Of a stretch of 64,000 nucleotides of DNA, positions 21,701 through 61,400 are shown in pieces; the stretch's first letter is position 1, and every line of letters starts with the position of its first letter. The notes under the pieces are model-generated. The model made no database searches. It saw only the letters and a program-made list of their open reading frames with translations, and had not been told where the DNA came from. The position numbers and the translations under genes were made by a program. This DNA is from Ascidiella aspersa. Its lineage: Eukaryota. Where the stretch lies: the NCBI GenBank assembly GCA_963924565.1, contig OZ004615.1, forward strand, positions 6,634,001 to 6,698,000, given 5' to 3'.

Positions 21701-24700
21701 ATGTAAAAAACAACTGGTTGTCATTACCAACCAAATTCTGTCATTGCTACTGTAAATAACACAAAGACTTTTTTCGGGCCTGTCGGATTCTACGTTTTGG
21801 TTTCGGGTACTGTCGGATTCTACGTTTTGGTTTCGGGCACCTGTTCGCAATTATGTGACTTTTCTACCGTTCATTGGCAAAGTTAACCGGTTTGACCTGT
21901 TAGACAAAAATACACTCTAGCTCAGTGGTTCTCAACCTTTTGAGCTCACCGGTAAAATTTTAAAACAAATGTTGCGGACCGGTGGGCCTTCAAAAATAAA
22001 AATAAACCCATAATGTAGTTACGACAAAAGTATGAGACTTAAAAGCAAAGAATCGTAACTTTAATTTATTGAGCAATTTGGTGCTGTCTTTTTGATATCA
22101 TACGTGTTATACGTGGTTCTATTACAAAATGGTCTTAAAGTTAAAGACTTGAACGAGTTGTAGCCTACTTTGAAACACTTGGGCACAATACTTGTAGCAT
22201 TGTGACATACGATAAGTCCAAAGTAGACCATTCTCTATGTCACGATACCACAAATTACGGAATCTGCGAAGTTGTAAATTTGATGAACAAGCCTTTTACA
22301 TTTTGCATTTTGCAATTAAGATATAAAATTGTAATATATTTGTCGGACCGGAACCATTTCACTAGCTTGCACAATAAGAACAAACCAAATAAATACCGTT
22401 GCAATTTCGTACAGTTGCAATAAGAAGTGACACGTATTTTTGGTATTTTATTTGTGACATTAACCCCTGCTCCAAACAAAATTCTTATCCTACACATCAA
22501 CCCAACATTTTTTACTTTTTTGAGATTTGGTATATACATACATGTATGCGCAAATAAACAGCTAATCCAACAACATTGCAAACTAAACTGACTGCCCCAA
22601 GTAGGCATTTGCATGCTATCTAGTAATGCATAGGGCGTAACTCTCCGCAAGAGTTTATGTTTTTTTAAACATATGTGTAGAATTTCGGACAATTGAGATC
22701 AACTTCGAGCATATAGTTGCAGCCATGTATGCCTCTTTTAGTGGCGCCATATGGGTCTTTTGATGAAAACATTTTGCTTTAGATAAATATAAGCTATCAT
22801 TTCTCAACATGATCAGAATAAAACTGCAAGCGACCACGACTTTCCTAACCTTATATTTCATTTTTTGTTACACATAGCAAATTTTCGGCGCTCTTCGCGA
22901 ATCTCTTTTTATATCCTAATATTTTTTTCAACGGAACTTCGTAATGAAAGTTGTGCACACTTATCTAATTTATTTTTTTGCGTATTATGTTATGTCTTTT
23001 AAATGAGATCAAAATAAACGGCCCTGCTTAGTTTAGCAGTTTTTGCCAACCTATAACTATAGATGTTAAAAACTATTATATGGCTCTTATGGAAATACAA
23101 CCAAAAATATTTAACTTTTATCGCCCTCTTAGCTAAAAAGGTTGCCGACCCCTGTTATAGGCCATTAAGGGGCATAAGAATGTTTATTTAGGGTTTTTAA
23201 ATGATAAAAGGTAACCTTTTCCCTACATCCCTGTTAACTTCTACGCTCTAATGACAATTATTAATATGAAACTTGTGTCATGTATTAAATGGTTGCAAAT
23301 GTGGCCATATGAGAGTTAAATCAATCATAAAGCCGAAAGCCTTTTACAAGTTAATAATCATGATTCATAAAATATCGTTTTACTTTACAGTGAATTTTTA
23401 AACGTGCTTTACGAAAGTTTATACAACATTGCTATAGTAGAGTTTTATAGTTAAGTGCCACATACGGAATTTTATAACGCTTATTTCACGTTATACCTCA
23501 CCTTTTGCTATAAAATTAAAAAAATACTTTACTAACATTGCGGCAGTGTTTCTTTTATGTAACCACGGTTAAGGTTACATATATAGTTTTTTACAACGTT
23601 TGTTAACGTAATGTGAAACTGTAATACTACCCCAACACTGTTAGTTTGTTATTTAAAGGTTCCAAACAACTATGGTAAAACGATCTTTTTCGACGTTAGT
23701 TGATTTACGTTTTTTCCACGCTATATTAAGACCGTAGCTCAACGAAGCTTAACGTTTGCGCAAACTTTTTAACAGCTTTAAAAAAAAAATAGTTTTCTGG
23801 TCAGAAATCTTTGCGAAAGAACATTGCGAAGTTTTGTGTTTTTTGGGTATACTCCACTACATGATGTGTGTTTATGGCCGTTAAATTCCCATAAACGCTG
23901 GTCAACGGGCTTCCGGCATAACAATGCCCGCCGTTACAATAGCTGGCCAACAAAAACACGAGTTGAAAAGAGGGCGGGAACGCGTTGAGTAAGGGTGGTG
24001 TTTTGTTTAAGCTGCTCGCCCAGAGTTAAGGTGGTGTTTTGTTTGCATAAAAGGGAAACTTAACGTTTTCTGATGTAATGGTGACTTGTGCCTGGGGAGA
24101 AATACATGGCGTTGCGTCTCCGAAACCTGGATGTAGCTTCTTTCCAAATTACCGGATTTGCCACGGTTTTCCGAATTGCCGGATTTACGAATTGTTGTCT
24201 TACGCGACAAAAGCCATTTCTTTTAAAAAGCGAACAAGAATTAGGGTTATCCGATATAATTGTGCTATTTCCGCCTAACAACATTACCCGCTCTTTAAAC
24301 TAAACATGTACGACCCGAAAAAATAATGTTGTAGTAACGAATGTAAAAAACAACTGGTTGTCATTACCAACCAAATTCTGTCATTGCTACTGTAAATAAC
24401 ACAAAGACTTTTTTCGGGCCTGTCGGATTCTACGTTTTGGTTTCGGGTACTGTCGGATTCTACGTTTTGGTTTCGGGCACCTGTTCGCAATTATGTGACT
24501 TTTCTACCGTTCATTGGCAAAGTTAACCGGTTTGACCTGTTAGACAAAAATACACTCTAGCTCAGTGGTTCTCAACCTTTTGAGCTCACCGGTAAAATTT
24601 TAAAACAAATGTTGCGGACCGGTGGACCTTCAAAAATAAAAATAAACCCATAATGTAGTTACGACAAAAGTATGAGACTTAAAAGCAAAGAATCGTAACT

Positions 24701-27700
24701 TTAATTTATTGAGCAATTTGGTGCTGTCTTTTTGATATCATACGTGTTATACGTGGTTCTATTACAAAATGGTCTTAAAGTTAAAGACTTGAACGAGTTG
24801 TAGCCTACTTTGAAACACTTGGGCACAATACTTGTAGCATTGTGACATACGATAAGTCCAAAGTAGACCATTCTCTATGTCACGATACCACAAATTTCGG
24901 AATCTGCGAAGTTGTAAATTTGATGAACAAGCCTTTTACATTTTGCATTTTGCAATTAAGATATAAAATTGTAATATATTTGTCGGACCGGAACCATTTC
25001 ACTAGCTTGCACAATAAGAACAAACCAAATAAAAACCGTTGCAATTTCGTACAGTTGCAATAAGAAGTGACACCAACCCACGTTTGTTTTATATGTTTCT
25101 TGGCCGGTTAACGTGACTACTAAAAAGTGCCGGTTCTGTTTTGACAAAGCTTATGTTTCCATCTTATCACACCCCATGGTAATCCTTCGTTGCCTTAAAA
25201 GTTGTTGATTGACATGTAAACCGAAATGCCAGCCGGCAAAACCATACTAATCTAACAACAGAGGCAGTAACGTTTTGATTGCTATTGTTCCTAATTCTAA
25301 AACTGTTCAACTACGGCCGATACGACTCTTTTGTTCGACAAGGAATAAGTTGAAGTGGACCTAATAATTTTAATGCTAAATATCTATAACGAAGCCTAAA
25401 AAATAGGAAAAATTACATAGGAATTAATCCTGTTGTATAGTTCCATTTCCAACAGGTGGGCTACACACAAGCCCGTTTGTTCTTTTATTATAATCTTAGT
25501 GTTAAATAAGCTTTCATATAAAGTTGCGCACATTACTATGCTAGTAGCGCGAAGTGGTTTTGAATTGGTTGATTTCTAACAACTGACAATAACGTTATTT
25601 TGTTTCCACGAAAGACCGTAAAGGCCGGCAAAGATAGCAAAACGTTGCTTGTCGAGTTTGGCTGCTGTGTTATTTTGCCGGGTTGCCGCGTTTCAGTAAC
25701 TAATTAAATAAACAGCAACGTCAAGTAACTAAAACGCCGGGCGAACACCGAGAATTAGGCCGAAAAACTTCGTGATTAAACGCTATAACCGAGGTGAACC
25801 ATTACGGGGCTCGTCCAATTGTCTGGTCGTGCAAAGTGGAACGGCATTATGTCGTAACTGTGTCGCTGTCATGAAAAGGATATGACACCAGTGCTGCTTG
25901 CAGTCATTTTGCGGACAAGACCGCGTTCAGCCTTCACTGTTTTATGTTAAGGTATTATATTTTAACAATCGCGCATGGGCGCTATAGGCAAATAGCTGCG
26001 CATTTGGAAAAATGCGAAACCAGCACCTGAGCTGCCTTGAGCAAAGTTTTAAAATTTGCAAGGGAAAGTTGGTTTTATTTAGGCGATGTTTCTGTTAAGA
26101 TGCCTACGCATACATGTACAACAATTGTGATCGAGCTCTTCTAAGGTCGTTTTTTTTTACCGAACAACTCCCGGTGTAGCCGAGGTCGTGAGTTCGAACC
26201 TCACCGCAGGTTATTTGTTTTTGTAGCCTGGCTTTTAATAGCTTACATGAAAATCCTTAATTGATCAAGTGACTCGGTTAGTGACTACTAACAAATATTA
26301 TAGTCAAGTGGTTTGCAATCTTGTCAATTCTAATTCCGTTATATATTACCTTTTAAGTTGAAAGCGCACGCTAGACCAAAATTTAGAAGGATTTTAGCAG
26401 CCTTGGTAAAGTAGTAAAACCCTTGGAAAATCACACGTGTTCTTATCCAAACACGATCTACAAGCTCTTATAGTATTCGGTCTGTAAGTAAAGTTACACA
26501 TAACATCCTAATTTCCGCTTATAGCTTTCCTCTTCGGCGGCATCAACTCTTCTGTGCACGCGATAATGTACACCTACTACCTGATGACAGCCATCGGACC
26601 GCACATGCAAAAGTACTTGTGGTGGAAGAGATACATCACCGTCATTCAGCTGGTAAGTCACGACTCAGTTTTCAACGCATTTTAAAAGCGCCCTGGTGCC
26701 ACTAAATAAAGCGGCGATGATTTTTTATTTGTAGGAATTTTTTTAAAGCGAAAAAAACACGCAATGGAATATGGCAGACCGATAGAGACAATGTAAACCA
26801 GAGTCTCATAACCAGGGGTGCTCGCACCCCTAAGGGTACGAAAACTGTTCCAAGGGGCTGCCGGGATGCTGAAATCAGACACAAAAATGTATACTGTAAC
26901 TTATTTCTTTAATCAGCTAAATGTAAAACCAACGATGATTTGAAAGGGGTGCAGCAAGGTAAAAGGTTAGGAACCACTTAATTGTGAACCATCCCAATAC
27001 AACTCTTTGGCTCCACTTGTTGTCTTACTATGCAGTGAGCGAAAATTTGAGCTTCACGACATTTTTGTGTGAAAGTCGGATTAATCCTCAACGCTATTTT
27101 GTTCAAAAAAATATATATATTGGGAAGGCAAAGTTAACCACGACAAAATGTAAGATAAAGTTAAATATATTTCCCAGAATTTTATCTTTGAAGATAAATT
27201 ATAAATGATAACTATCAAACAGTCAACAGCTCCCCTCCAAATTAGATATAGCACAAAAAGGACCAAAAGTCTATTTAAATTAATGTGCTAAATTAAAATT
27301 AAAGTCAACATACAATCTATTTGATTATTTCGGTTCCTTCGGTCGTTCATTCTCAAACATTAGAAGCATATTCTGTATTAAATATAAAAACAAGCATAGT
27401 TTGGGTTATACTTATTTAAAACACATTTCCCCTACAAACCTGTTAGTTAATTTGGATATATCGCGCTTTCCAAATAAAAAATGTATAGGTTGTTTAAACA
27501 TTTTGGAAGCCTTTTAAAGTCTACATTGTATTTTGTTTGTTGTAGTCTTGAAAAATTAACCGAAGTCAATATCTGGTTATTTTTTGTTAGTTTAATTGGT
27601 CTAGTAATGCCTACAAACTACACATTGAACCGATGTACAGCCTTTAACCTTGAGTCACGGGTTGAATGCTGCATCCGTGATTGATTATCAGCGGTTACCA

Positions 27701-34424: not shown

Positions 34425-37400
34425 CTAAATGACCATCTCGCCGTGGAGGACCTTTTTCTTGACGTAGCGGAGGACCACCAAACGGAGGACCTTGGTGTAG
34501 CGGCTCTCGCCCTCAAAGAAAGTCCCGCTGGCGCCTGCGACGAGACTAGGGTCGATTCCTGTCCTCCGCCTCTGTTAAAAACAGTCGCCAATGTGAGAGG
34601 GATGCATGTCCTAACGGAGTAGTTAAATTGGTAAACCGCATTTTTTCCGATGGCACATCACATCAACAGAGATATATATGGTTATTATTAAGGATCAATC
34701 GATTGAATTAGTGCGAAATAGCGATAATGACGAGTAACTACATTTAAAACCTATGAATCTTAAAAAGCTTGGCGGGATCGGATGCTTAAACAAGCGCCTT
34801 TGGGTGTTTTATTTGCAAAGCGTTTTAACAGGTTAATAAGGCGTTACTTCAGTGTTTATTACCCAAAATTGGATATCGCCGTTTGATTTAATAGGGTCGC
34901 TGACTGCAGTAGATTTTTTATAGTTAAATTTTTTGAGATTGGTTATGATCAAGATTTCTTTCAAATTAAAAAAAGAAAAGCTTCGCGGTTATACTTAAAC
35001 GATTTATTTTGGGGTCGCAGGTCGCAGCGAAAAAAACAGAAACACGACTTTAGATGAAATGAGCTTACTATTCAAAGATCGTACTAGATATGTTAACCAT
35101 AAATTGCATATTTATGGTGCCATTAAAAAACGCAATTTCCAATTTTGCTTTGACATTTTTGCAAGACAAAATCAATGAAGAAACGGATTACTTTGCTTAT
35201 GCGTATCGTTAAACATTTAACGGCGTTGCATTACCGGGCAAACGAAGGTGAAAAAAGTGATTTTCTCTGTGGCTAAAAAAACCTTAATTTTTTTGAGTAG
35301 CAAATCGATTGCCCGGCACAGATAATAGGGAACCTGATAGTTAGGTCACTGCCCAATATTGTGCCTCAAAATATAGCTATAGTCTATCCAACGTTTATGT
35401 GGCACTATTTTAGTAGCAACATAGAACTACACAGGCCCAAATTTGCGAACCAGGTGAATGTGAACTTTTTTAGAAGAAAATCTATTCCCTGCACAGATAA
35501 TGGGGAACTTTACGTCCAGTCACTGCCAAAATAAAAGGCCACTATTCGATTCGCGTTTAAGTGAGATTATTTCAGCAACATCAAAAAAAAACCCAAGGGT
35601 CAAGGTTTGCGAACCAGGTGGATGTGATTCTCGCCGTTGGCGGCCACCAGGTCTTGCGAAGTGGGATGGTTGATCCTGTAAACTCTTCCCGACATCCTGC
35701 GGAACCAGGACTCGATCTTGGAGAGGAGCTTGCGGATCGATTTCCACGTGGGTAGAAGATTCATCGGAGGAGGGCAGTTAATTTCGTTCCGGATGAACTT
35801 AAGCCAGAGCTGCGTCCTTAAAAGCGAAATTCTATGTTTATGTGCGCCCGCTAAAGTGTTGTGCCGTGTATTTTTGGTAAGTTTTAAGTTTGGTTGTAAT
35901 ACGAGTTTTCCATCTTCATTTGAATAGGTTGGATTTTTTACGCGAAAAATTTCCTTTATTAGTTCGAATGGGGTAAACTTTACTTTTACCTTTAATTTAG
36001 GAGACCTGACGCGTAAGGCACCCAAATATTGCCCCCTAAGGGCGCAATCCCTCGGTTAAGAACCACTGCTGTAACTTATGGACAAACATTGCTATCAAAA
36101 TTACATTGTCTGACTTTTTCACTTTTAATGTAGTTGTGTGGACGAAATAGCATTTAACTTGTTTAAACGAAAGTATCAGGAAATATAATACTTATTTACA
36201 TTGGAGCAAAGATTTGACAAGGGTATAAATCATTTTCCGTCTGTTTTTACACTTTTTTGTCGAATAGAAAATAACAATTGGCGACAACAAATGGGAGGAC
36301 ATCAAAATTGTGTCTATACTTCAAACAGTATTTCGATTGTTTTAACTGGATTACTTCAAAACAAAGGCGTATACTTAAACTCTATGGAAAGCGAAACGCC
36401 TCTTAAATCACTCGTTGTAGATTTCCATAAAGCGACACCGATTGGCCAAACTACCTGTGGAATTTCCATTCTCTCTCCGAGTCATCGTGTGTCTTCTGGA
36501 AGCTGTTGCTCATCATGGCGATAAGCATGTTCACCAGCAATATAATGGCGCCGAAATGGTAAAGGCCGATGATAATACCTCCGGCCTATACAGGTTTGAA
36601 GCCACGTGTCAAGCAAAGTTCTAAGTTTTTTTCTTATTAAACAAAGCAGATTTGCCAATTTGCGGTAAGGCGTTCATGGTTGTTAAATGTATTTTACTTG
36701 TTGTACTGTTAGATACATTTAAATTAAATAGCTTGGCATGTGGGGCGGTAACGTTTACTTACATTAGTTACTTACTTACTTGCTAACAGACTTACTTACA
36801 TTATTTTATAAAATTGTTAGTCATTTGAAACAAGATCAAAAATGCACAGCCTAAACACTCTTTGGGTATTCCAAACGTTAGTTAAACGAGCCACACAAGC
36901 AAACGAATGTTATGATTCTTTGTGTTTCGTTCATGCGGCGTGCAGCAGGCAAATCAATACGATTTGATGCGATATTTCAATGTAAAAGGACAGTTGATCC
37001 TGACAATTGATCAAGGGTAATTAGTAAATATTGTCCATCGAAAGCAAAGTTTCGACAAACGCAGTAACTGCTGGGCATGGTAATAAAAATAAGACCACGC
37101 GGAAATTAATTCGGAAGGAATCCATATTATATAGTCCATAAGGTAACCAAAACGCAACTCAATGCATCAGCAAATGTAGACCAAGTCGTTGTACCAAAGC
37201 CGCAACAAAAACAGCAATAAAATATTCATACGAGACATTAGGAAGAAACCCGGTGCTGTCATTTCGGACAGCCGATCCCCCGTCAAGGGATTCAATTTAA
37301 AAAGCTATGTCTAGCATCCTTTATGGTGGTTTACAATTTCGGAAGTACACCCAAAGCAAGAGCACGCTTCGGCTGGATATCAGCAATGTCGTATCTCAGT

Positions 37401-40400
37401 CATCAGCAGTTGGATATGTTCGATATCTAGCACGTATATGCAACTCAGCAGACAAAACAGAATGAGCTTTCGGACTGGATTCACAGTCCTTTGCTGTGCT
37501 CGAGTTTTAACGTCTGTTTCAGCCAGAGGTTCGATCAACGAAAAAGCAAAAAAATATTTATATTTGAGCCAGCAAAACTTAACAAAATAAAAGCAAAACG
37601 CAAGTATAATGCTGCAATTCGACGGCAAAACGATAGCAATAAAATAACCAGTCACATTTCTGTTTTCAGTGTCGCAGCCCTTGGGCAAAACAAAATCGCG
37701 TCAAGACACAAAATGGCGCCCGATTTACTGACCACTTCCTGCATGATGAAGGTTTCCCGGCAATTCTCGACCGGATACCAGGCCTGCGGCTCCCCATACC
37801 CAAATAGGGTCCAGAAGAAACCGTTCATTGTGGTCGAGAGTTTAGTCATCTCGCCAGACGACGACACATTAAAGTCTGCGCACATTTTTTGCTTAAGTTT
37901 AGGCCGCCGTTAATTCTGTTGGCCTTAGTTTTATTGCTCTTCATCTAACTGGTGAACTTATAGTAGGCCGTGGATTTGTCGATGATAAGATACATTATTG
38001 GCAAAATTCATCATCTCGACCATAATGACCGTTAAGACCGTACGAATTGTGTTGTGAAATTCCGTATATACAATTCCAGTCAAAGATTAGACAAAAAAGA
38101 GTGAGCGCATAATATAAAATACTGGTATGATATATTTAAAGTCTGTTTCTTGGGCCACCAACTTAATTGTGTGGTCTAGTGGAGAACGCCAACGTTACTT
38201 CCCAGATAAATTATGTCAGACTTATTTGGTTACTTACAACAAATAGTATTATCGTGTATAATTTAAATATAATAAAAATCCTTAAAACAAAACTGAAAGC
38301 ATCGCAGTGGTGCCTAAGACCACCTGACGAGTAATGCACAATATATAAAAAGATAAATACCTCTCTGCTGTAAATATAAAAAAAACACAATGCACCCGCC
38401 TGTGCAACAGCTAAAAGTCCGTATCACTTGTATACAACAACATGCAAGAGCAGGGCAAACTTAACAAAACGTAGTATCCCTACATTCATTCCCGCAGCCT
38501 TTGAATAAATCACAACAGCGATCCTGCCACCAAATATTAACCGAACCTTGTTTGTTAGTCACCTCACATATACACAAGAAAACACAAAGCGCAATAATGT
38601 ATACCGTTATGCCACCGACGTACAAAAATGAAACCGCAGCAACGGCAGGTTAAGACAACCCGAAATTAACAGAAGCCAACAAACGTGTTAGTCACCGCCC
38701 AACAACTGAAACAATTAAGTAGAGCACGGGTGTCAATAAAAAGGAGTAGTTTTTCTCAATTAAGCACGCTAATTGCATTAATAGATTTTAATAAATTTAC
38801 AAATTACCAGTCGATTTAAGTCAATTTACGTTCTTATCTTCTGCAAATATGCTTTTGCGACTCGAATCGTAGAAAGCTTAAACGTGGTCCCCCGAAATGT
38901 AATAGGTTAAAATATATTTTGAAAATAAATTTAAATTGAATCTAAACTCAATTAAACTTGGGCTTTCTTAATAACAATGCAGTTGTTAGCAGAAAAAAGT
39001 TTGTTACTTCATTTGAACTTTACACACCCAATGTCCGAAGCGCCTCTTTTGTTTCAATTAATACAAATTAAGTGCTCTAAGTAAGTAATTAAATTAGCAC
39101 CCCTGTTTCTGCGTTTTTATGTTAAAGCCACCAGAACGCCACAGGCAAAACCAAGTCAGTAGCGACACCGTCTGGCTAACAGCGACACCGAGTGACCAAC
39201 CGCCTCCTGCAAGACCAACTTTTCGGGACAGTTGTCGATCGGATACCAGGCGTCCGGATGGCCGTAGCCGAACAGGGTCCAAAAGAAACCACCCATGGCG
39301 GCCAGAATCGACGCCATTTCCTCCGAAATTGGGTTGGTGAAGTCTTAACGTGCGAAGGAAAGTCGTGTCAGACAAGCTTTTGTGAAAGTTCTCGAGCGGA
39401 TTGCGGTAATGCGATGATTATATAGATAACTTTGGTTTGCATTGCGGCCAGGTAAAACGCGTTAAAAGTTTATGTGCACCTTAAATACTTGATTTTGATG
39501 CAAGCATAGTGCCTTGTTTGTCCCAGAGGGCAAGCTAGCAGTTTCATGTAGTTACGCATAAAGACAGGAGCAGATAATTGTGAGGGCACCGTGTTTTAAA
39601 TGCCGAAAGAAATGTGCAAACTATACTATTTATTTGCCAATAATATAGGGAATCGGCTAAACCGAATTTTCAGAATAGAAATAACCTATAGATTTGTTAT
39701 ATGCTGGAGAAAAAGCAAACACCACACCAGACTGCCGCTGAAGTATGGAGCTAAGAAATTTGACATGAATAAACAAGGTTAGTTGATAAGGTATATGTCA
39801 ATGTCAGTCACACTGCAACAATTAGTATCATTCGGGCTTGGGTAATTCGACATCATATTGCTGCTGTAAAAATAAGAGAATAAATCAGATTAATATCAAT
39901 GTGCATTTTTATACAATTTCGCAACTAAGCACGTCGTTAGTAAGCCGCCGTGAACTCTTTTTAGTCTTTCGTGGCGCGGTAAATCAAGTGATACAGTGAG
40001 GTTTTTATGAAGGGTGAATTTTATGAAGGGCACACGCAGAAACGTTTGCCAGCGCTTTGTCATTAGTGGAAAGCTGTAGTGCTGTCAAACAAGGATAGTG
40101 TGCTGACCACTTCGTCAAGCATGTTCTTCTCCGGGCAGTTATCAATGGTGTACCACTGTTGTGGGCTGCCGTAGCCGAAGAGCGTCCAAAACATGCCGGA
40201 CAGCGCCCCTTCGAAGCTCGTCATGGCCTGCGACTTGGGCGTGTTGGCTGGAAGTGCATTATCACCGGTCAGGTTAACTCTAGGTGCCGCTATACACGCG
40301 CGCACGCACAGGCACAGGCACACACACGCACGCACGCACGCACGTACGGGTACGCACAGCCACGCACACGCACGCAAACGCACAAATACGCAAACGCACA

Positions 40401-43400
40401 AACACGCACACAAACACTAACTACCAAATGTACAGATCCAGATAGACCAATAGACACATGTCGATTGTGCTAGTCACTTTGTCAAATGTGATCAGTTATG
40501 TTAAAAGAAGCAAACAGTTAAAGTAAGATTATTGTACAGTGCGACTACTCTAGGTTATAGCAGACGACGAAAGGGGTTTAAACTCAACTTTATGACCAAT
40601 TCCTATGAATACAACTAAAAATGCCTCAGAAACGGCAACGAGTACGATTCAATCAGTTGTACCCATATGATTTGAGTATTAGTTTGTTTTAAAGTATATT
40701 TTGCGTCTGGTATGACGCGCATTTATGTCGTCTTCCTGTAGAAAAGGAAAACCTACCAAAGTTAGATTGGGTAAGTTTTCAGCTAAAAGTTTGTACCTAC
40801 CAAAGTTAGATTGGGTAAGTTAGCTAATGCAAATCAAACATCTAAGCAAGCCGTCAATCAGTTGATTTTTGATTCGGTTACACGAGATTTACAACTATAT
40901 TCTACACAAACACACACGCGAAACGTCAACTGCCAGAATCGGCACACGGTCACCAACCCAAATGGTAAAGGTCATTTTTTCGGGGCAGTTGGGAAAGCCG
41001 ATGGACTTGGCGGCATCCCAGTAACCAAACAGGGTCCAAAACATGGAACTAAGCGCCTCGAAAATGTTGGTGAGCTTCAGCGACGACGGATTCTCATCTG
41101 GTGATCGACAAATTGAGGTTTGCTGACTAAAATCTTTTTTATAAACTTTAGGACGCAACTTAGTATCGTGCCCTTTTGATGAAATAAATCCTGGACGAAA
41201 TGGCGCGGGCTTTACGGAGTGCTTTACTTTCTATACGCTACTTATATAGTTAAAAATCACTCTATAATATTCACTGCTTTGGATGGGGAATTTTTTACAA
41301 TTTTGAAATAGCCCGACCATCGATTTTGGCTCAATTATACGTGTCGAGTTTTCAGTTTAGGATATAGCGTGCTTTGTCGAATAAAAAATCAAAACGCCAT
41401 AGTATAATGATTGAGAGGTTTCGTAAAATGCTATATATTTAACAAAAAACTATAACTAATCAAAATAGTGTTCTTAAAATATAAGAATTACATATAAATT
41501 TAAGTTTTGTGCCAGGAAAGTTATCCTACCAGCGCTCTAACAAAATTTTTCGCTGGTGGTTTGAATGTGTTAATGTATGACCAAGTGTCCATGACACCGT
41601 TATGACATCAAGCGATGTGAAATGATGATAAAAAATAAAATAATTTTATGTTGGGGAAATGTGGTTTATGAAAATTCAATAGAATGAAGCTTGATAATGA
41701 ATTGCAAAGTCAAAAAGGTCGAATATATCGACATATTTAAGACATTTCGATACGAGCTTGTATCGTCTTAAATTATTGTTAAAATTCATTATCAAGCTAC
41801 ATTACAGATTCGTGCATATGTACTCAATAGAATGACCCATCACAAACACAAATGTCTCCTGATATTTTTATGCATAGAGGCCCACGGTTGTTATCTAACC
41901 AGCTCGTTCAAGAAGTACTTGCTCTTGCAGTTTTCGGTAAAGATCCATTTAAGCGGTTCGCCGTAGCCGAAAAGCGACCAAAACATGCCCAAAAGGCTGC
42001 CCAGCCACGAGGTTATCTGCATTGATTCCTCGTCGTCGAAGTCTGTCATCGCGTCAAAGTATCAGGCTCGATTAGTGGTCAGCGTTTTAACGTTTATCCG
42101 GCCCAGTTCAAAATTAAAGCTAAGGGTTTGGTTAACAACTTAAGTGCTGTGCAGTTTCCCGTATTGAATATTGAATACAGTTAGCTTTCTAAGCATTTAG
42201 TTAAATAGTATAGGGCGGGGGTGGGCAACCTATGACCCGTGAGCTAGATTCGGACCGCCAACGCAAATCCTATTTTACAAACTGGACACGAGGCCATTCC
42301 TCATAATTTTTTGCTTTCAACTCGTTAAAAGCTTTTTTTTTGCAATTTGCGCAGTCTCGCTCCCATATCGAGTGTAAATGGCAAACCTCCCTAGTTTTAT
42401 CCCTGATTAACAGTCGTTGGGATTGTTACAAGATGCGTAAAGTCTACACAGTTAAAATTTGACAGCCCGCAGAGACCTTTCTGAGTTTGGTTTCGGCACG
42501 CGACAAGAAAGTTGTTGCCCACCCCTAATATAGGGTATAAGATCAAATATATATCTCGAAACATTTGCTTTTAAACCTGTCTTTCAAGTCTAATTATTTT
42601 TTTATAGTCTTTATGATAGAAACTGTGCGTGAAAATAGATGGATACTTTAATATAATTAGGTTTACAAATTAACAGGGTAATTATGTTTAATAATTAATA
42701 AAATAAATTAAACAACAATTGAGGCAATTTGCACTGAGCTAAAACAATTAGCCACTATTACCTTTACAAGACACACATGGGCGCTCGGATACCTTCATTT
42801 GACTCCAATCAGCCGTGTATGCTGGTAGAAGGTCAAGGGTCTGAAAACAATTCAAGATATTCAAACAACCGTTAACCTTAGCCTACTACAACTAGTCCAA
42901 CGCTACAGCCATGATCCTAAACTGGTAATAATATATTTACACTTACACAAGTTGAAAAATTCTTTCAATTTTAAGAATATTCTTGCTATCTTGGAGTGCT
43001 TAAATAACTTAGTAAATAAGTTTAAGCGCACCCTAATAATTTGTATGATTGGCATATAGGTCCTTTCTTGGTACAATATCTTACTTAAGTTGAACATAAT
43101 TTTGTCAAATTGGTAAACAACCTTTTTATATACCTCTAATTGTAAGAGCTTTAGCATTTTTAACAAGGTTTGTTAACATAAAAATTGCTATTTTAATCAT
43201 GTTTTATCGACATATTTATGATCATGATCGGTTGTAAAAGGGATCGCAATCATGATAATAACTATCATTATAGTCGTGATAATGATAAACTCATGATTAT
43301 CGTAATGAATATAATCATAATCACAATTTTCGTAATCCTGTTCACGATATTCATCTCCTCCTTTGTGATCATCACGATTATCGTTGTGATCATCACGATT

Positions 43401-46400
43401 AATGTGATATTTTGTGATCATCACGATTAATGTGATCATAACAGTTATCTGATCAGAAATCATGATCACATCGCCGTAATCTTTACGTGATCACGCAATT
43501 ATCGTGATAGCGATCATCAACGTGATCATTGTGATCGTGATCATAACAATCATATAATAATCATCATCACCGTAGTGATCAGAATGACGATTACAATCTT
43601 CATGATCATGTTCTGGATATTTATCACCGTCGTTGTGCTCATCACGATAATCATGATAGCAATAATCAAGGTGATCGTTATCGCGCACTTACGACGTTGC
43701 ACTCCTTGGGGCTGTTGCATGAGCAGTTCTTGTCGAAGGCGTAAGGCGTGTAGAGCTCCGTGATGCCGCTTCCGAAGGCCAGAAAGACGATGCAGAAGAT
43801 GACTGAGAAGCGAAAAGCGTCGTGCAGCATCAGATCAAGGGACACCTGGGAGAGTGGAACAATTCTTGAAGCGGAATTCTATTTAAGCTTATGTTAACAT
43901 GTTTCTTTGCAATATAAGCCTTTATTGGTTCCAACCTGCAGCGGCCCGAAAGTCCTTTCGGCTCTTAGCAGTTCCATGATCCTCATGTGGATAAGGATGT
44001 ACGAGATGGCGATGCAGATGTCGGACAAGGGCAGGGGGTCAAACATGCCGCCATGCCAGAACACCTTGGAGTCTTCCGGCACTGTGACGTCACAAATAAA
44101 ACAATAATTGTACAAACGAGGGCTACCAGCGAATGTTAGATAATAGAGTTCTTCGCGCAGAGCTTTCTAAAGTTATGATCAACAACCTAAACCACTTAAA
44201 TAAAAAGAAACGAACGTGAATGACGTGTTTACGTAAATAACAAAGGAAAGTCAATATATAGCCCATATAGAGTCTGCCAGGCATAGAGCATAAATTATAT
44301 CAAAAAAATGTATACGTCCACCGTTTTTAATTTATAGTGCCTTAATTAAAAAAATAGTGAATTACCCACATTGTGTTTCCAACTCCAATAACCTACTAGC
44401 TCGCAAACAGTACACAATTTTTCTACGGAGTCTTATGATTTTACGTTATAGATAGTCCGAATTAACAGCGGGCCTTTATCAACATATTACTTTATAACAG
44501 AGCTGTGCCACTTCATACAAACCGTAACATGATTTGTAAATGTGTAATAACGTTTTACAAAGGTGATGGTAATAAGGACATCAAAGAGCTTGCACAGTTC
44601 CTAAAATATATTTTCAATAACGTACTTTTTTCCGCCGTAGCGATGTGAATGAGTCTAAGCACCATGTAAGCTGTGTAGAGAATGATAGTGGTCATGTCGT
44701 TCCAGTTCCAAATGTCCGTCATGTATTCACGCAACCCCTTCATCAAACATTAAGCACCGTAATGAAAGTGAAAAAATGCATACGAATTTATTGATTAATT
44801 ACCGGTATCAATATTATTTTATACAAATTTATAAATAAAAACATAAATACTGTTTAAGCCAGTGGTCGGCAAACTGTGGGCCACAGAACCATTTTTAGTG
44901 GGCCGCGAGTTACTTTTTAATAGCTTAGTGTTATCATGTAGTTGTGGGCCGCGTGATAGCCGTACGTTCATTGCGCTTTATTTTAAAATTTCGTGTGACT
45001 TAGAAATTATATGTTGTCTCAGCGTGGTTCAGACCCACGTGCCAAATTTGGTCCTGAAAGCCGGTCGAACTATATTTTTTTCCAACTTAAACTATATGTA
45101 AACGCAAAATGTTCGCGCCTCGCGCGTATATTCTTCTTTTATAGTATGTTTTGCTTGACATGGCACTGTTTTGGGCCTCAAGGCGCCGTGTAATATTTCA
45201 CTTTAAAAACAGTTATCCTGAATCCACCACTGTTTTCGTATTGGTTTTACATAGTGGCCTTCAATACCTCTGAAAAGAGTACTTTGGGCCGCGACAAAAA
45301 ATGTTTGCCGACCATTGGTTTAGGTTGCAAATAATTCCTAAACATTTAACGTGAAGTAACAGGCCCAGCGTCAATCCAACAGCGTCCGGATATTTTTAAT
45401 GTTACCTATAGATTAGGTGCTGTCTTAACCTACATACAATAAACTGCCTTCTAACAAATTACCTAGGAGAGTTTCGATGCAGAATATAGCACGTTACTAA
45501 TCGCACGCTAAAAGTCCCAGTATCACGCCTCCCGAAAACCCTGACGTTCGTCATCGGCTAATGTATCGGGCAAAACAACGTTAAAACCAAAGTACGCTGC
45601 ATCTTGAAAAACTCTGAAGCATATCGTGCGAGACCATTGACGGTCCCATCTAACCTAACGCGTTTTGACACCCACTTTGTCTGGAAGTGGGCAGTCAATT
45701 GGAAAAGCGTGGTCATGAGGATTTTGCTCAGACTAATTGCCTTTGCCAAAAATTTGGTACTACAGATTATTAACATAAAAATATGTTTACGACCAAAATT
45801 GGGCTCCACTTCTTCCGCTCTGACTTTTACTCAATTTGCAGGGAAACTAGAAGAGCTATAAGCTGCAACCATTGGAACATATGGGAAGTAATAACAGACA
45901 AAGGGGCGTTTACCTGATGATAAATCTCTCTGGATTCCTGGATAAACTTCCCGACCACCCAAAGGTACGCAACGGAAAGCAATGGCGATATCTGCAAAAC
46001 AAAGTATTTTTTTTAAATAAATTACATATAACTGACTCGGGCTAGTCCTTACCGAATTTTGACTGCGGTTAAATGAGATAAAAAAATTATTTGTCAAATA
46101 TGGCGATTTGAAACTAAGTACCGGTACCTCGAGAGTTTCTAAAAGTTTTTAATACACCTTTTTTGTATGACGGAACAGCAAACAGACAAGGAATGCGAGA
46201 CTTGCATCCATCCAATAAAAACCTGACCGTAATCGTAATTATCAAGTTTCAAGTTATGACTGATGTGACTATATTTTGTGTAGAAAATAAGCCGCGATTT
46301 GTTTTTTGGGGTTGTTTTGACCCAATTGTATTAGTTCTGACTCGGTAACAATTTTCACCTATACTTGCTTACTACACTATAAACTTAAACTCTTGTAGTT

Positions 46401-55400: not shown

Positions 55401-58400
55401 GAAAATTACAACTTAATATACCGTAGTGAACATGGACATTTCCCTAATCAATTTAATCTATATATTAGCTTGACTTTAGAAATGAAAGACTTACAACCGG
55501 ATAAAACATTACCAATTTTGCTCAAAATATTGCTTCTTCATAACAGATAACAATATACAGTATAGAAAATCTGGCACAACTCCTTTTCATATTTGTTAAC
55601 CTTTAATGATAAAAAGTTACAACCGGATAAAAAGTCTCAATGTTGCCTAAAATTATCGCTTTTCATCGTCAAAACAAGATACTAAGTAAATAAAATCTGG
55701 CAGAAGAAAAACTATTTTTTATATTTTAGCTAAACTAAAGTCATAGAAGGTTTACAACCGGACAAAACAGTTAAACGCCCACTTAAAACAAGAAAGGCTC
55801 GTCTTGGCCAACCTACCGACTTGGTCGAGTAGGAACTTGACCACGTCCACGTGATTGTTGATGGTAGCCAGGCTGAGCGCGGTGCGATCCAGCGAATCGA
55901 CGCAGTTTACGTTGAGGTAGAACAGGTAGTAGGTCTGCTCCTCGAACAACTTCTCCAGGCCCTCGATGTCGCCGTTGGCCGAGAAGTGCAGGAAGTCCAG
56001 CTCGTGGCTGTTGAGGCCACCTGAAAAATACAAAAACGCTCTGGAAACCAGGACTGCGTAGTAGGAGTCGGAATTGGGCTTGGGACTTGGGACTCGGGGA
56101 CGGCAAAAAACTTTGCTAGAGTCGGATTAGGGACTCGAAACTGAGAATCCAGGGAGTCGGCTAAGTTTGCTGGATTTGGACTCGGGACTCTAGACTTAAA
56201 GGAGTCGCTAAAGTTTGCTGAAGTCATACTCGGGACTCAGGACTAGAGTAATACTACTTCCCGAGGTGCTCATATGCAGTTAGCAAACTTCGAAACTGAC
56301 AAACTGTAAATTGTAAAGGTGGAATATGCATATGGTGGAATATTTTCGACCCATGTTTAGTGGGTGGATGATTGAAAAACACCCTTATGAGTGGATTGCT
56401 GAGTATTCACCTTATTTTAGTTGAGTAAATGGATGAAACACAGGATGTTAAGCGAAATCGGATCTGGGACTCGACAAAATCGCACATTGGCCGGAGTCGG
56501 ACTCGGAATCCGGTTCAATTTTTTGGCTGGAGTCGGACTCGGCAGTTTTTTTTTAAACCGACTCTATTTTAGGACTCCGCAGTCGTGCTTGAAACTACAC
56601 ATACAGTAGCGAAAAACGTTTTTCAGTCCTGTAAACAAGTTACCTTTAGAAGACTAAAGTTCCGAGCGTGTCTCGTGCAAAATTTAAGTCCAACTTATTT
56701 TTGTCACAAACTAAGATACAAGTGCCTAGTCAACATGAATGAACACTGATAGAAAAAAATTAAACGATAACAGCGTTAACGGTAACCAACTCCAGTCAGG
56801 AGCAGTTATCTCGCTCGGTAGGGATCATGATGTTCGTCAGGTCATACCCGATCGTCATTCAGCTACTCGTCGAAACCAATCAAAGTTAAAAAGGATTGCA
56901 ACATGGAATGTACGAACCATGCATCAGAAAGGAAAAGTGGAAAATGTGATTATGGAGATGAAGAGGTTAAAAATTGATATTCTTGGCATATCTGAAATGA
57001 GATGGACAGACCAAGGCGAAATTACTAAACAAGGATTTAAAATCATATGGTCTGGAGGAAGCAAGCATGAGCGTGGCGTTGGTTTCATACTCGGAAATAA
57101 AACTGCTGAAAGTTTTATGGGATGCTTGGCTGTATCCGATAGAATCATTCTTCTTAAACTGAAAGGTCAGAGGACTAATCTCAACATTATACAGGTTTAT
57201 GCTCCTACTGAAAAAGCCCTGACGATGAGATTAGAACGTTCTACACACAACTGAATTTAGTTAAAAAGAAATGCAAACACGGTGAATTATAATTGTGATG
57301 GGAGATTTCAATGCAAAGGTGGGAAGAGGAAGAGACGGAGACATTGTTGGGGGTCATGGACTTGGCGATCGCAATGATCGTGGAGATTTGTTCGTGGATT
57401 GGTGTCGTATCAACGATCTCACTATAAGCAACACATGGTTTCAGAATCATCCACGCCGCATCTGGACATGGAAAACACCAGGAGACCAGACCAGAAATCA
57501 AATAGATTACATCACAATTTCAAGGCGCTTCAGGAATAGTGTTTTAAATGCAAAGACTTATCCAAGTGCTGACTGCTCGAGCGACCATGTACCTGTTGTC
57601 GCAAATATCTATACCAAACTAAAGATTTGTCGAAAACCGGTAAGAAAACTGCAATACAATGTTGCCGCCTGTCAAAATGCAAAATTAAAGGAAGTACTGA
57701 AACATGAAATGGGTAATGCACTGAAAAACCTGCATGACAAAAAACAGAGTTGGCCAGAAGACATATTCCAGGAAATCAAAACGTCACTGAGAATATTAAT
57801 GGAAAACAACCTTCCGAAAGTCCAGAGAGAGAACTTGCAAAGCTGGATGACAGATGAAATAAGAGGTTTACTGGAAAAAAGGCGCAGAACCAAAAGAAAT
57901 CTTAAGAAGTACAAGGAATTAGATAAGTGTATTAAATTAAAGCGCAACTCTGCTTATGAAGAATTTCTAAATCAAAAATGTCAAGAGGTAGATAAGCTTT
58001 TTAATATCAGCGCGAAAGAAGCTCACCAAATAATTAATCAGCTCAATGGAAAGAAGGAAAACTGGATAAAATCGGGCTGCGTGAAGAGTAAAACCGGAAA
58101 GATCTTGTTTCAAAAAGAGGAAATTAAAAATCGTTGGCGAGAATACACCCAGGAACTGTACAGGGATCCAACAAGAAACGCCCCACCAATTATGTTTAAA
58201 GAACCACTAACTGGGCCAGAAGTAATGAAATGTGAGGTTGAGAAAGCCCTGGCTAGCATGAAAAATGGAAAGGCGGTTGGTCCTGATGAAATTCCAATAG
58301 AAGTGTTGAAGGCTTTGGATGACATTGGAATCAATTTACTTACTTCTTATAAATAGCATTTACAACACTGGTCAAATTCCTCAAGACATGCGGAAGTCGA

Positions 58401-61400
58401 TTTTTGTCGCACTGCCAAAAAAAGCCGGAGCAATCGAGTGCAAAGATTATAGGACAATAAGCCTTATGAGCCATATTGTTAAATTACTGCTAAGAATATG
58501 TATGAATCGAATAAAAAACAAAATTAATGCAGAAATTGCAGAAGAACAATATGGGTTTATGACTGACAAAGGAACACGAAATGCGATATACGTGATGAGA
58601 ATACTCAGCGAAAGAGCAATCGAAATGCAACAAAAACTCTATGTTTGCTTTCTTGACTACAGGAAAGCTTTTGATCGGGTCAATCATGCGCAGATGCTAC
58701 AGATGCTAAAAAACATCAACATTGATGACAAGGATCTAAGAATCATTCAAAACCTGTACTACAACCAACATGCAGTGGTGCGCGTGGGAGACTCCGAAAC
58801 CGAAGTTATTACCATAGAAAAGGGTGTCCGACAGGGATGTGTGTTATCTCCAGACCTTTTTAATTTATATAGCGAAATCATCTTAAGAAGCATAGCTGAC
58901 TTAGAAGGGATCAAAGTTGGTGGTGTAAACATCAACAATATTCGGTACGCTGATGATACGGTACTTATTGCAACATCCGAGAAGAAGCTTCAAAATATGG
59001 TAACAACAGTGGAAGAAGAAAGTGTGAAAATGGGAATGGCTTTGAATGAAGATAAAACAGAATGTATGGTAATTGCCAAAGTAGCAGGTGTGAACAAATG
59101 TAATATACTAGTTTCAGATAAACCAATTAAACAAACCCGAAGATTTAGATACCTTGGTTGTATACTTACAGATGATGGTCGGTCCAAATCTGAAATTAAA
59201 GCCAGAATTGCACAGGCAAAAAATTGCTTTATAAATCTCACGTCAATTTTGACAAACAAAAAATTAAATGTAAATACCCGTGTGAGAGTTCTTAAAAGTT
59301 ATGTGTTGCCTGTTCTTCTCTACGGGTGTGAAAGTTGGACTTTCACAAAGGAACTGATTGACAACCTGAGTGCCGCTGAGATGTGGTTCCTGAGGAAAAT
59401 GCAGCGTATATATTTTACGTCCCATAAAACCAATCAAGAGGTACTGATTCAGACCAATCAACAGAGATCACTGTTAAGCACTATAAAACTTAGACAACTC
59501 AAGTTTTTCGGCCATATAACCAGACACCAAAAACAAGAATTCATAATTTCGTGTGGCAAAATATGTGGAAATCGTGCACCTGGACGATAAAGAAAAATGC
59601 TTATAAATCAACTGAGGGACTTTCTGAACATCAAAGCAGAGAATATTTTTGAATTAGCAAGAAATAGTAACATATGGAGAAAACAGTGTTTCATGGCAGC
59701 CGAAGCCTGGTTCAGGCATGGCACTGAATGATGATGAAGATACAAGACCCACTTTTATTTATTGTCATAGCAAATTGATATGTCCAAATATTAGTTAACT
59801 ATAAATGAACTGATCAACTTGGAGCTAAACTCATCGTCATTAATTCTTCGTTTTAAAATGAAAACTCATCGATTTGGAGCTGTTTTTGGTTTAGGTAAAA
59901 CCAAACAAAATGTTGTAGACCCAATATTATTGTCAATGTATTTGTAGAGTCTTTTAAAACGAAGAACTAATGACAACTGCAAGTTTTGTGTATCACGGTT
60001 AAATCATCGTCTAGGCCGTTATATTTTGTTTTCTAAACCAGTTTTAGTAAAGCTGTTTCGCTTGCATTCGAGGTGTAACACTTTGAGGACCATTTATTTA
60101 AATCATATCGCTCAACTGCCCGGTATTAGTTAGAATTCGAAACAAAATTCTCGAGTTGCGGTGTTCGTTGAACATTAAAAATCGGCCTTAACTAAAGCTA
60201 AACTTGGGACTTGATGTCAATTTGGTAGCCAAGCGACAACTGTTAATTAATGCAATCTATATTTTTGGCTCAAACTGTTCCTACCAAGCATGATTTTAAT
60301 CAAAAAAGGCTCATCTGGTAATTACATTTTCTTCTCCAACGTTTCTGTAACCTATTTCAGTCGCCTTCGTTAAATGAAATGTCGTGGTAATAAAAACTAC
60401 CAGATTAGCTTTAGAGAATAATGGTTGGAGGTTGAAGTAAGACGTATAGTAAGAACATTAAAGCCCATACAGAAGTAGGTATCAATTTGACCGTTTTAAA
60501 TAACTCTTTATTCATTTTATTGTTGAAACATCTACAGGAGCTGTTTTTGATTCCTTTTTACTCAACGTTGTACAGGGACGTTAGTCACTTCGACCCAACT
60601 TTCGAGGCCCAAAACAAGTTTTTAACCGGACGGAAGCATCGGTCAACTGCTCTGTACTTACCGTCGTCCATCATCTTCGGGATGTTTAAGCTGCAATTCC
60701 TCACGTCGACGCTCTTCTTCGACGCGAATGAGTAGTTCGACTTTATGGACCTATATACAAAGAAAACGTCGATCGTTGTCGATTTAAACAATTCGAAGTT
60801 GCTTTCAAAGTTGACAGCAACACACAAAAAGTGTAAAAAGGAGTGGGGCGGTATTGTTGTAATGAACTAGAGACAGAAATATCACACGTAAAGTTTGGTT
60901 CTATAGAGACTGCATGGGCAATATACTGACCAGCAGGGTCCGATCCCGGCGTTTCATTTTGGGGTATAAGGCAGGAAAACTATTCAGACATGTCGTTAAA
61001 ATTACGTCGTAACAAGACGCAACTTAAAAGTTAGAAGCGCGAAAAAATTGCGTTTATTTGGTTTCACTGGGCGAAACGTTTACTAGTTAAAAACCTCAAT
61101 ATAAAAACAAAACAAAAAAATGAATCCTCTAATAACAACGTGCAGCTTCACCCTTGCAAAAATTTATCAACCAATAATTTTGCAAGGGTGAAGATGAAAG
61201 AGGTTTAAATTTTAATTCTTAGTTGTAATGTTTGTACTCACTAGTGGTCGTATATAGAAGGTTAAAAGCAAAAAACATGTTTGGCACCAGCAACAACAAT
61301 CTTACAAATCTCGTGCGTTAATGTGATTCTTTTTCAGGATGAACAAAATGCACTATTCTGTGGTAGGGGTGAAAAATATCTCAAAAGATTAAGAAGTAAT

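Follow-up and report, generated by a model that had tools for sequence, protein, structure and literature searches.

Five tandem, homologous pore exons in a TRPC4/5-like channel gene of the ascidian Ascidiella aspersa

Can a single TRPC channel gene supply several different pores through splicing? The question is raised by a 64,000-nucleotide stretch of the genome of the ascidian Ascidiella aspersa (GenBank assembly GCA_963924565.1, contig OZ004615.1, positions 6,634,001 to 6,698,000; this whole stretch is referred to below as the window), in which five homologous exons, here called A to E, lie in tandem between two constant exons of a TRPC gene. A preliminary description, made from the letters of the sequence, had interpreted them as mutually exclusive exons, each encoding its own version of the pore loop. 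The analysis presented here finds a real array that is conserved in other ascidians. It is likely to be a working cluster of mutually exclusive exons, most or all five of which are in use, and the gene probably makes several channels with different pores.

Organization of the pore-exon array

The array is encoded on the minus strand, as are all other parts of the gene, and is preceded by a constant exon for the pore turret (42840-42762; acceptor ...ttttcag, donor GTAATA) that ends in phase 1. Its translation, TLDLLPAYTADWSQMKVSERPCVSCK, closes with the residues ...SERPCVSCK and leaves one base over at the 3' end. The pore exons follow as A (42042-41900, 143 nt, filter FGYGE, donor GTTAGA), B (41097-40958, 140 nt, filter FGYWD, donor GTTGGT), C (40247-40108, 140 nt, filter FGYGS, donor GTCAGC), D (39343-39201, 143 nt, filter FGYGH, acceptor TTAAG, donor GTTGGT), and E (37875-37733, 143 nt, filter FGYGE, donor GTCAGT). 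Exon B lacks the GYG motif and belongs to the ancient type discussed below, and E is the sole variant with RNA reads. The second constant exon (36585-36455), which starts in phase 0, encodes transmembrane segment S6 and the TRP box; it reads AGGIIIGLYHFGAIILLVNMLIAMMSNSFQKTHDDSEREWKFH(R) and includes …NMLIAMMSNSFQ…EWKFHR. Between the two constant exons there are five homologous minus-strand exons and no more.

Each of the exons A to E is open solely in the frame that completes the split codon of the turret exon. Their peptides align nearly without gaps, B and C lacking the first residue, and nine residues are invariant in all five (S6, F20, W21, L23, F24, G25, Y26, N37, and C38 of the pore peptide). 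The remaining positions have changed to such an extent that pairwise identity is 28 to 57% in protein and 44 to 63% in DNA. On re-reading and translation of the minus strand, the preliminary description proved accurate in the coordinates and lengths of all seven exons, their AG/GT sites, and their phases, as well as in the strong protein divergence of the five variants and their (M/F)FW...LFGY...NC consensus, which takes the form MFW in A, B, and C and FFW in D and E, the FW, the LFGY residues, and the NC being invariant. Its statement that the flanking introns share no extended similarity needs one amendment: the introns are otherwise unrelated, but the likeness between D and E reaches 13 nt into the downstream intron.

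Reading frame and mutual exclusivity

The length of every pore exon is 3n+2 nt, and the consequences for the reading frame can be followed by translation. Read as a second variant, in frame 0, exons A, B, C, and E each contain a stop codon; exon D can be read through in that frame, but a stop is then met in the exon after it, which is read in frame 1. When all five exons are skipped, the S6 exon is read in frame 2 and stops at codon 34. The earlier claim that inclusion of zero or two pore exons would shift the frame thus holds, with a premature stop in every such combination. Inclusion of none or two is accordingly non-productive, and the array also shows the other features of a mutually exclusive cluster, namely, tandem homologous exons that share phase and length class and have their own splice sites. 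Because several exons follow the premature stop, the skipped and double-inclusion transcripts should be substrates of nonsense-mediated decay.

In the proposed mechanism, the mature mRNA would consist of the turret exon, one of the exons A to E, and the S6 exon, while the inclusion of none or two would shift the frame, expose a stop codon, and lead to removal of the transcript by that decay pathway. The single TRPC1/4/5-like gene of this ascidian could in this way yield as many as five subunits that differ in nothing but the pore.

Identity of the gene and isoforms of its orthologues

The identity of the gene was established with single exons, or with natural proteins of relatives, as queries instead of a spliced model of the window gene. 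P0011, the longer of the transcripts assembled from relatives, retrieved the proteins annotated as “short transient receptor potential channel 4-like / 5-like” of Clavelina lepadiformis, Ciona intestinalis, Styela clava, and Phallusia mammillata. In tblastn searches, these ascidian TRPC4/5-like proteins match the window exon by exon and in the right order, from 56021 down to 34428, with 43 to 95% identity; the S6 exon is 95% identical to that of Clavelina and 93% to that of Ciona. The matched ranges comprise upstream constant exons from the ankyrin repeats to S3 (56021-55821, 53801-53544, 52053-51898, 50998-50792, 49984-49817, 49294-49139, 47648-47400, 45994-45845, and 44740-44642), the S4-S5 and S5 region (43696-44061, with an intron inside and approximate exon ends), a downstream exon with the TRP helix and the CPPPMN motif (35818-35621), and a C-terminal exon, RYVKKKVL...EMVI (34574-34428). 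The first ∼200 residues of the orthologues have no match in the 64-kb window. As judged from these ordered protein matches, the window gene is the orthologue, in another ascidian, of the TRPC4/5-like genes of Clavelina, Ciona, and Styela.

Other comparisons agree that the gene is a TRPC, as it had first been described. Pfam searches with single exons returned only weak Ank and Ion_trans matches (Ank, Ank_2, and Ank_3 on the open frames 56126-55755 and 53822-53544, with E values of 1e-5 to 2e-4). The S6 exon matches solved TRPC3/6 structures with an E value of 1.4e-8 (37 bits, TRPC3, same residues) and TRPC5/4 with ∼1e-7, and the relative transcript P0004 matches TRPC5 with an E value of 1.9e-48, followed by TRPC4, TRPC1, TRP-gamma, and TRPC6/3. 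The S6 exon closes with the TRP box EWKFHR (EWKFAR being the TRPC type), and the next exon, which reads TQLWLKFIRNEINCPPPMNLLP, carries a proline-rich motif of the LPPPFN type. The LFW motif of the pore helix appears as MFW or FFW, with the FW invariant and a conservative change in the first residue, and aligns to “LFWSIFG” of TRPC4/5. The AlphaFold2 (AF2) model of Clavelina isoform X1 superimposes on TRPC5 with a target-normalised TM-score of 0.77. As for the TRP_2 domain (PF08344), the single exon 51022-50720 has no Pfam match, and the same exon aligns to the linker region of TRPC5 in relatives; the precomputed domain lists of the orthologues contain PF23317, PF08016, and Ion_trans and lack PF08344.

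The orthologues provide the most direct evidence on how the array is used. The four Clavelina isoforms X1 to X4 (XP_076822126-129; 990, 989, 989, and 989 aa) differ solely in alignment columns 790-837, the two Ciona isoforms X1 and X2 (XP_078489676 and XP_018669083) solely in columns 805-853, and the two Styela isoforms X1 and X2 (XP_039252029 and 030) solely in columns 832-881. The variable block, ∼48 residues in length, lies exactly between “...CVSCK”, the residues that end the turret exon of the window, and “GGIIIGLYHF...”, and corresponds to the pore exon; it shares with the window peptides the FW.LFGY...C core, which ends in NC in most of them. The one-residue gap among the Clavelina isoforms matches the difference between 143- and 140-nt exons. 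Clustered at 90% identity, the Clavelina, Ciona, and Styela proteins fall into groups of 11, 9, and 6 members, respectively, and each of the transcripts assembled from relatives, P0004, P0011, and P0009, contains exactly one pore exon. These isoforms, differing in this exon block alone, show in the orthologues the mutually exclusive use that had been proposed. The RefSeq pipeline is not known to add isoforms without supporting transcript data.

The A. aspersa genome contains two further TRPC-like S6 exons. In one of these paralogues, a single open frame covers S5, the pore, and S6; in the other, one pore exon (YWTLYGYGWGQ) separates the S5 exon from the S6 exon (G000:C2 ∼12966135-12967577, i.e., L011 135-1577, minus strand). 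The pore-exon array is specific to one TRPC gene of the genome. The GYG filter of the YWTLYGYGWGQ exon makes this motif common to at least two ascidian TRPC genes, so that it is not peculiar to the array.

Predicted pore chemistry

Residues were mapped through a HMMER alignment of P0004 to mouse TRPC5, in which the pore helix spans residues 569-580 and the selectivity filter residues 580-584, G581 forms the constriction, N584 is an upper filter residue, and S6 starts from residue 596 (PMC6656536). The pore exon maps to TRPC5 residues ∼561-596, and F-G-Y-G-D of P0004 aligns with F580-G581-L582-L583-N584. This alignment against the TRPC5 filter positions assigns to the exon the last part of the turret, the pore helix, the complete filter, and the loop that leads to S6, much as the preliminary description had done.

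At the position of TRPC5 N584, exons A to E carry E, D, S, H, and E, respectively, and the last two filter residues are GS, GT, GT, and RD in the Clavelina isoforms, GD and DN in those of Ciona, and SQ and GN in those of Styela, so that acidic, neutral, and titratable side chains alternate between variants at the outer filter position. This position we take to be equivalent to that of the glutamate that governs Ca2+ permeation in TRPC3/6. With the differing filter sequences of A to E, the isoforms most likely differ in how divalent cations permeate or block them, and heterotetramers of the pore isoforms could also form. The constant S5-turret region contains five Cys residues, which, with the invariant Cys after the filter, suggests a putative disulfide that would tie the variable loop to the turret, similarly to C553-C558 of TRPC5. 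A K+-channel-like reading of the GYG motif was considered and is kept as a low-probability idea: the B type has no GYG, and the distance from the pore-helix tryptophans to GYG differs, by our reading, from that in Shaker.

Age of the array and selection on its exons

Among 1.84 billion representative proteins, a profile search recovered just nine with this pore type, seven of them short open frames on genomic DNA and two assembled transcripts (P0004 and P0009); when the exon profile was used in a word-based protein search, no more than two fragments came up. In the seven genomic fragments, which come from other assemblies, a V codon stands right after the exon end, as fits a GT donor. The tree built from 24 pore-exon peptides draws on few alignment columns and leaves most branches unresolved, but it contains a supported clade that unites exon B of the window with Clavelina X4, Styela X1, and the fragments P0003 and P0007 (bootstrap 97, approximate likelihood-ratio test 89), which is also joined by the transcript P0009 (97/82). 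Exon B shares 52% identity with P0003 but no more than 41% with any other exon of the window array. The B type is characterized by FGY followed by W, R, K, I, or S, usually with D next, and by the absence of a tryptophan five or six residues further on, while the GYG type, FGYG.P..WY.I.NC, has three members in Clavelina and four in the window. The B type is the sole exon type that can be matched one-to-one across species.

Clavelina belongs to Aplousobranchia and Styela to Stolidobranchia. On the evidence of the supported B-type clade, which spans the window, Clavelina, and Styela, the split between the B and GYG types predates the divergence of these orders; the old duplication that had been suggested from the window therefore appears in the tree as well. 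The proposed history would comprise an ancient split into the GYG type and the B type, followed by multiplication of the GYG type within lineages.

Because synonymous sites are saturated in all exon pairs (proportion of synonymous differences, pS, 0.51 to 0.88), the ratio of nonsynonymous to synonymous substitution rates (dN/dS) is of little use. The proportion of nonsynonymous differences (pN, 0.23 to 0.51) is below pS in every exon pair, the smallest margin being that of A and D (0.45 versus 0.51). Among the 40 differences listed for the DNA runs, two are exon polymorphisms, 41951 in A and 40159 in C, both read here as synonymous third positions.

How many of the exons are in use

Several observations weigh against a cluster with most or all of its exons in use. 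RNA was sampled from one run (X4), of which ∼6% was read, over positions 36440-42439. In this sample, no RNA reads fell on exons A to D and no splice junction reached the reporting threshold. The mean depth was 1.3 to 1.4 in the two bins that hold exon E and 0.9 over the S6 exon; the reads, about five on the gene, were all oriented as expected for a minus-strand transcript. Four of them cover position 37884, which lies in the intron nine bases ahead of E, and some may therefore be unspliced. The RNA check proposed in the preliminary description thus yielded a few reads at exon E and the S6 exon, but no junction. Further, the RefSeq isoforms of the orthologues are automatic annotations, and the annotated variants reach at most four per gene (four in Clavelina, two in Ciona, and two in Styela) versus the five exons of the window. 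The functional difference between isoforms is a prediction from alignment, and the AF2 monomer model of Clavelina X1 has pLDDT values below 50 over most of the pore exon, so that it was used for the fold match alone.

A relative represented by the contigs L006 and L007 (Joint Genome Institute [JGI] metagenomes) has an S6 exon with 42 of 44 residues identical to that of the window. In L007, a single D/E-like pore exon of 140 nt, nearest to exon D of the window (60% identity in amino acids and 73% in nucleotides), lies 872 nt ahead of the S6 exon and has a strong GTAAGT donor. Upstream, 6.2 kb of intron rich in transposon sequence contains no second copy of the pore exon; the contig does not extend as far as the turret exon. 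The intron before this pore exon exceeds 6 kb because of the decayed reverse-transcriptase fragments inside it, which lie at 1100-3400 of L007. The single exon of L006/L007 neither supports nor refutes an array in that organism.

These data could be read to mean that only one or two of the five exons (e.g., E and the old B type) are still spliced in A. aspersa, the others being silent open relics of duplications. Along with the confinement of RNA reads to exon E and the S6 exon, such a reading could draw on the lone, strong-donor exon of L007, on the narrow pN margin of the A-D pair, the weakest sign of constraint, and on the fact that a 47-codon frame would, by our estimate, be open by chance ∼10% of the time. 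However, all five exons have kept their frame, both splice sites, and the invariant residues, although their synonymous sites are saturated, and the listed polymorphisms in A and C are synonymous. In Clavelina, four variants are annotated as full-length isoforms. The missing reads carry no weight, because they come from one run, read to 6%, with about five reads on the gene. Survival of a mere subset of functional exons is therefore regarded as rather unlikely, and a working cluster with most or all five exons in use remains the preferred interpretation.

Splice sites and the choice of exon

All five variant donors have a pyrimidine at position +3 (GT[T/C][A/G]G), and the variant acceptors have poor pyrimidine tracts; the constant-exon donors that could be placed are GTAATA, GTAAGC, GTAAGT, GTGAGC, and GTAGTT. 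Since the splice sites of all five variants are weak, they would suit a regulated, competitive choice between the exons.

A different mechanism operates in large arthropod exon clusters, where a docking site pairs with a selector sequence of each variant. If the choice were made here in this manner, the reading frame and decay would serve as a back-up only. Apart from that precedent, the idea gains some appeal from a locus-specific intronic element of 19 nt, TTGGYCAMTCGGTGTCGCT, that has exactly two copies in the 308.6-Mb genome, both of them in the TRPC gene and just after 5' splice sites. The first copy, TTGGTCACTCGGTGTCGCT (39181-39199, minus strand), begins 2 nt past the donor of exon D and is followed by a single 10-nt repeat of its core, CGGTGTCGCT (39170-39161, minus strand); the second copy, TTGGCCAATCGGTGTCGCT (36431-36449, minus strand), begins 6 nt past the donor of the S6 exon. 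However, a crude search for docking and selector sequences in this single species, made without comparative intron data, found no docking site complementary to selectors by each variant: the longest complementary runs between a site in a flanking intron and all four inner introns, 9 to 10 nt, are no longer than those obtained with six decoy introns. Complementary partners of the 19-nt element occur at chance frequency, the element is absent from L007, and no intron sequence is conserved with that contig. Docking-based selection is hence improbable at this locus, and competition between weak sites, policed by the reading frame, is preferred. The 19-nt element may be an intronic splicing element in its own right.

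Copy number and soundness of the assembly

Profiles built from the five exons, one of protein and one of DNA, returned only these five from the 64-kb window (next best E values, 0.19 and 0.7, respectively), and the protein profile found no further pore-exon copy in the whole 308.6-Mb genome of 75 contigs. The assembly was checked against contigs from three DNA runs, which represent three samples of one study under the same species label and one of which may be the source of the window itself. These contigs tile the array piecewise at single-copy depth, except at a (GTGCGT)n microsatellite that precedes exon C and at two high-copy repeats, and exon D, exon E, and the S6 exon occur together inside single contigs. 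That the array is an artefact, in which pore exons of separate TRPC paralogues or haplotypes were collapsed into one locus, is exceedingly improbable given this coverage in three runs, the DNA identity of the copies, far too low for haplotypes, the placement of the genome's two remaining TRPC-like S6 exons, which each go with one pore segment of their own, on chromosomes other than that of the array, and the isoforms of three other species that imply the same arrangement; the earlier view that no assembly error is involved thus stands.

The two high-copy repeats in the array introns lie at 41683-41803 and 42240-42439. The former has 21-nt terminal inverted repeats, 79 nt apart, and resembles a miniature inverted-repeat transposable element (MITE). 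The summed contig depth of an array-intron repeat in the DNA runs reaches ∼90,000 to 170,000, and many RNA reads map there.

Surroundings of the gene

Just upstream of the first TRPC exon found and antisense to it, three long overlapping open frames (171, 356, and 426 aa) occupy 56739-59587 on the plus strand; the last of them matches Pfam RVT_1 with an E value of 2e-41, so that the stretch looks like a recently active non-LTR (long terminal repeat) retrotransposon. Downstream of the TRPC gene there is a perfect tandem duplication of 2640 bp (19794-22433 and 22434-25073), 99.9% identical, which is either very recent or an assembly artefact. The window also contains plus-strand exons of a fatty-acid elongase of the ELO family (11389-11787 and 19005-19274), the latter preceded by a 33-nt minisatellite of 9.6 copies (18627-18942), and plus-strand Sushi and C-type lectin exons of a gene for a secreted or surface protein (97-297 and 2114-2419).

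Comparison with other systems and implications

Mutually exclusive exons that alter the pore of a cation channel have been described for NALCN, where exons 15a and 15b (and exon 31) switch the selectivity-filter ring between EEEE and EKEE, and for the snail Cav3 channel, where exons 12a and 12b switch a cysteine-rich turret; in both cases, Ca- or Na-type pores are obtained from one gene (PMC4436565). Those channels, however, have four domains, and the swap offers two choices for one of the four pore walls, whereas the TRPC gene encodes a subunit of a tetramer, so that the swap can change all four walls, or a mixture of them, with five choices. Among TRP channels, alternative splicing changes the pore loop of TRPM3, a member of another subfamily. 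The TRPM3 variants are reported to differ in pore-loop length, with changed properties (PMC9290681), whereas the array would exchange pore helix and filter in their entirety through homologous exons. In the vertebrate TRPC1/4/5 group, pore diversity is reported to arise from mixing of paralogous subunits with different pore loops (PMC13385394). TRPC5 and TRPC4 are the nearest solved structures, but they are products of separate genes with an FGLLN filter, while the FGYG and FGYW filters of the array come from exons of one gene. Dscam-type clusters likewise are tandem arrays of more than two homologous exons, one of which enters each mRNA; the TRPC array differs from them in being much smaller, in lacking detectable docking/selector pairing, and in that its 3n+2 exon length alone makes wrong combinations non-productive.

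In full-text literature searches, no description came up of mutually exclusive pore exons, whether in a TRPC or in another TRP channel, or of a five-way choice. The statement in the preliminary description that no pore cassette was known in a TRPC gene is consequently correct for the literature searched, although the isoforms were already present, unremarked, in RefSeq. The principle of a filter swap by splicing is known; relative to the literature searched, the array adds to it a choice, conserved in ascidians, among five versions of the whole pore helix and filter of a TRP channel that assembles as a tetramer.

Three ascidian orders share the B/GYG split, a pointer to a physiological need that has persisted for long. 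Should the isoforms differ in permeation, the five natural chimeras, identical outside the pore, would offer a ready-made test of TRPC selectivity, including that of the unstudied FGYG filter; the isoforms of the orthologues that RefSeq already contains are available for cloning and testing. A possible, although somewhat doubtful, scenario is that ascidians, with about three TRPC genes, derive from one gene the diversity of pores for which vertebrates rely on the paralogues TRPC1, TRPC4, and TRPC5: B-type pores with an acidic fifth residue and GYG-type pores with E, S, or H could be deployed by cell or in mixed tetramers and could have distinct Ca2+ permeability, block, or pH sensitivity, while the lineage-specific FGYG could provide a selectivity unlike that of the TRPCs studied so far. 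Splicing in this gene would then do the work of gene duplication in vertebrates.

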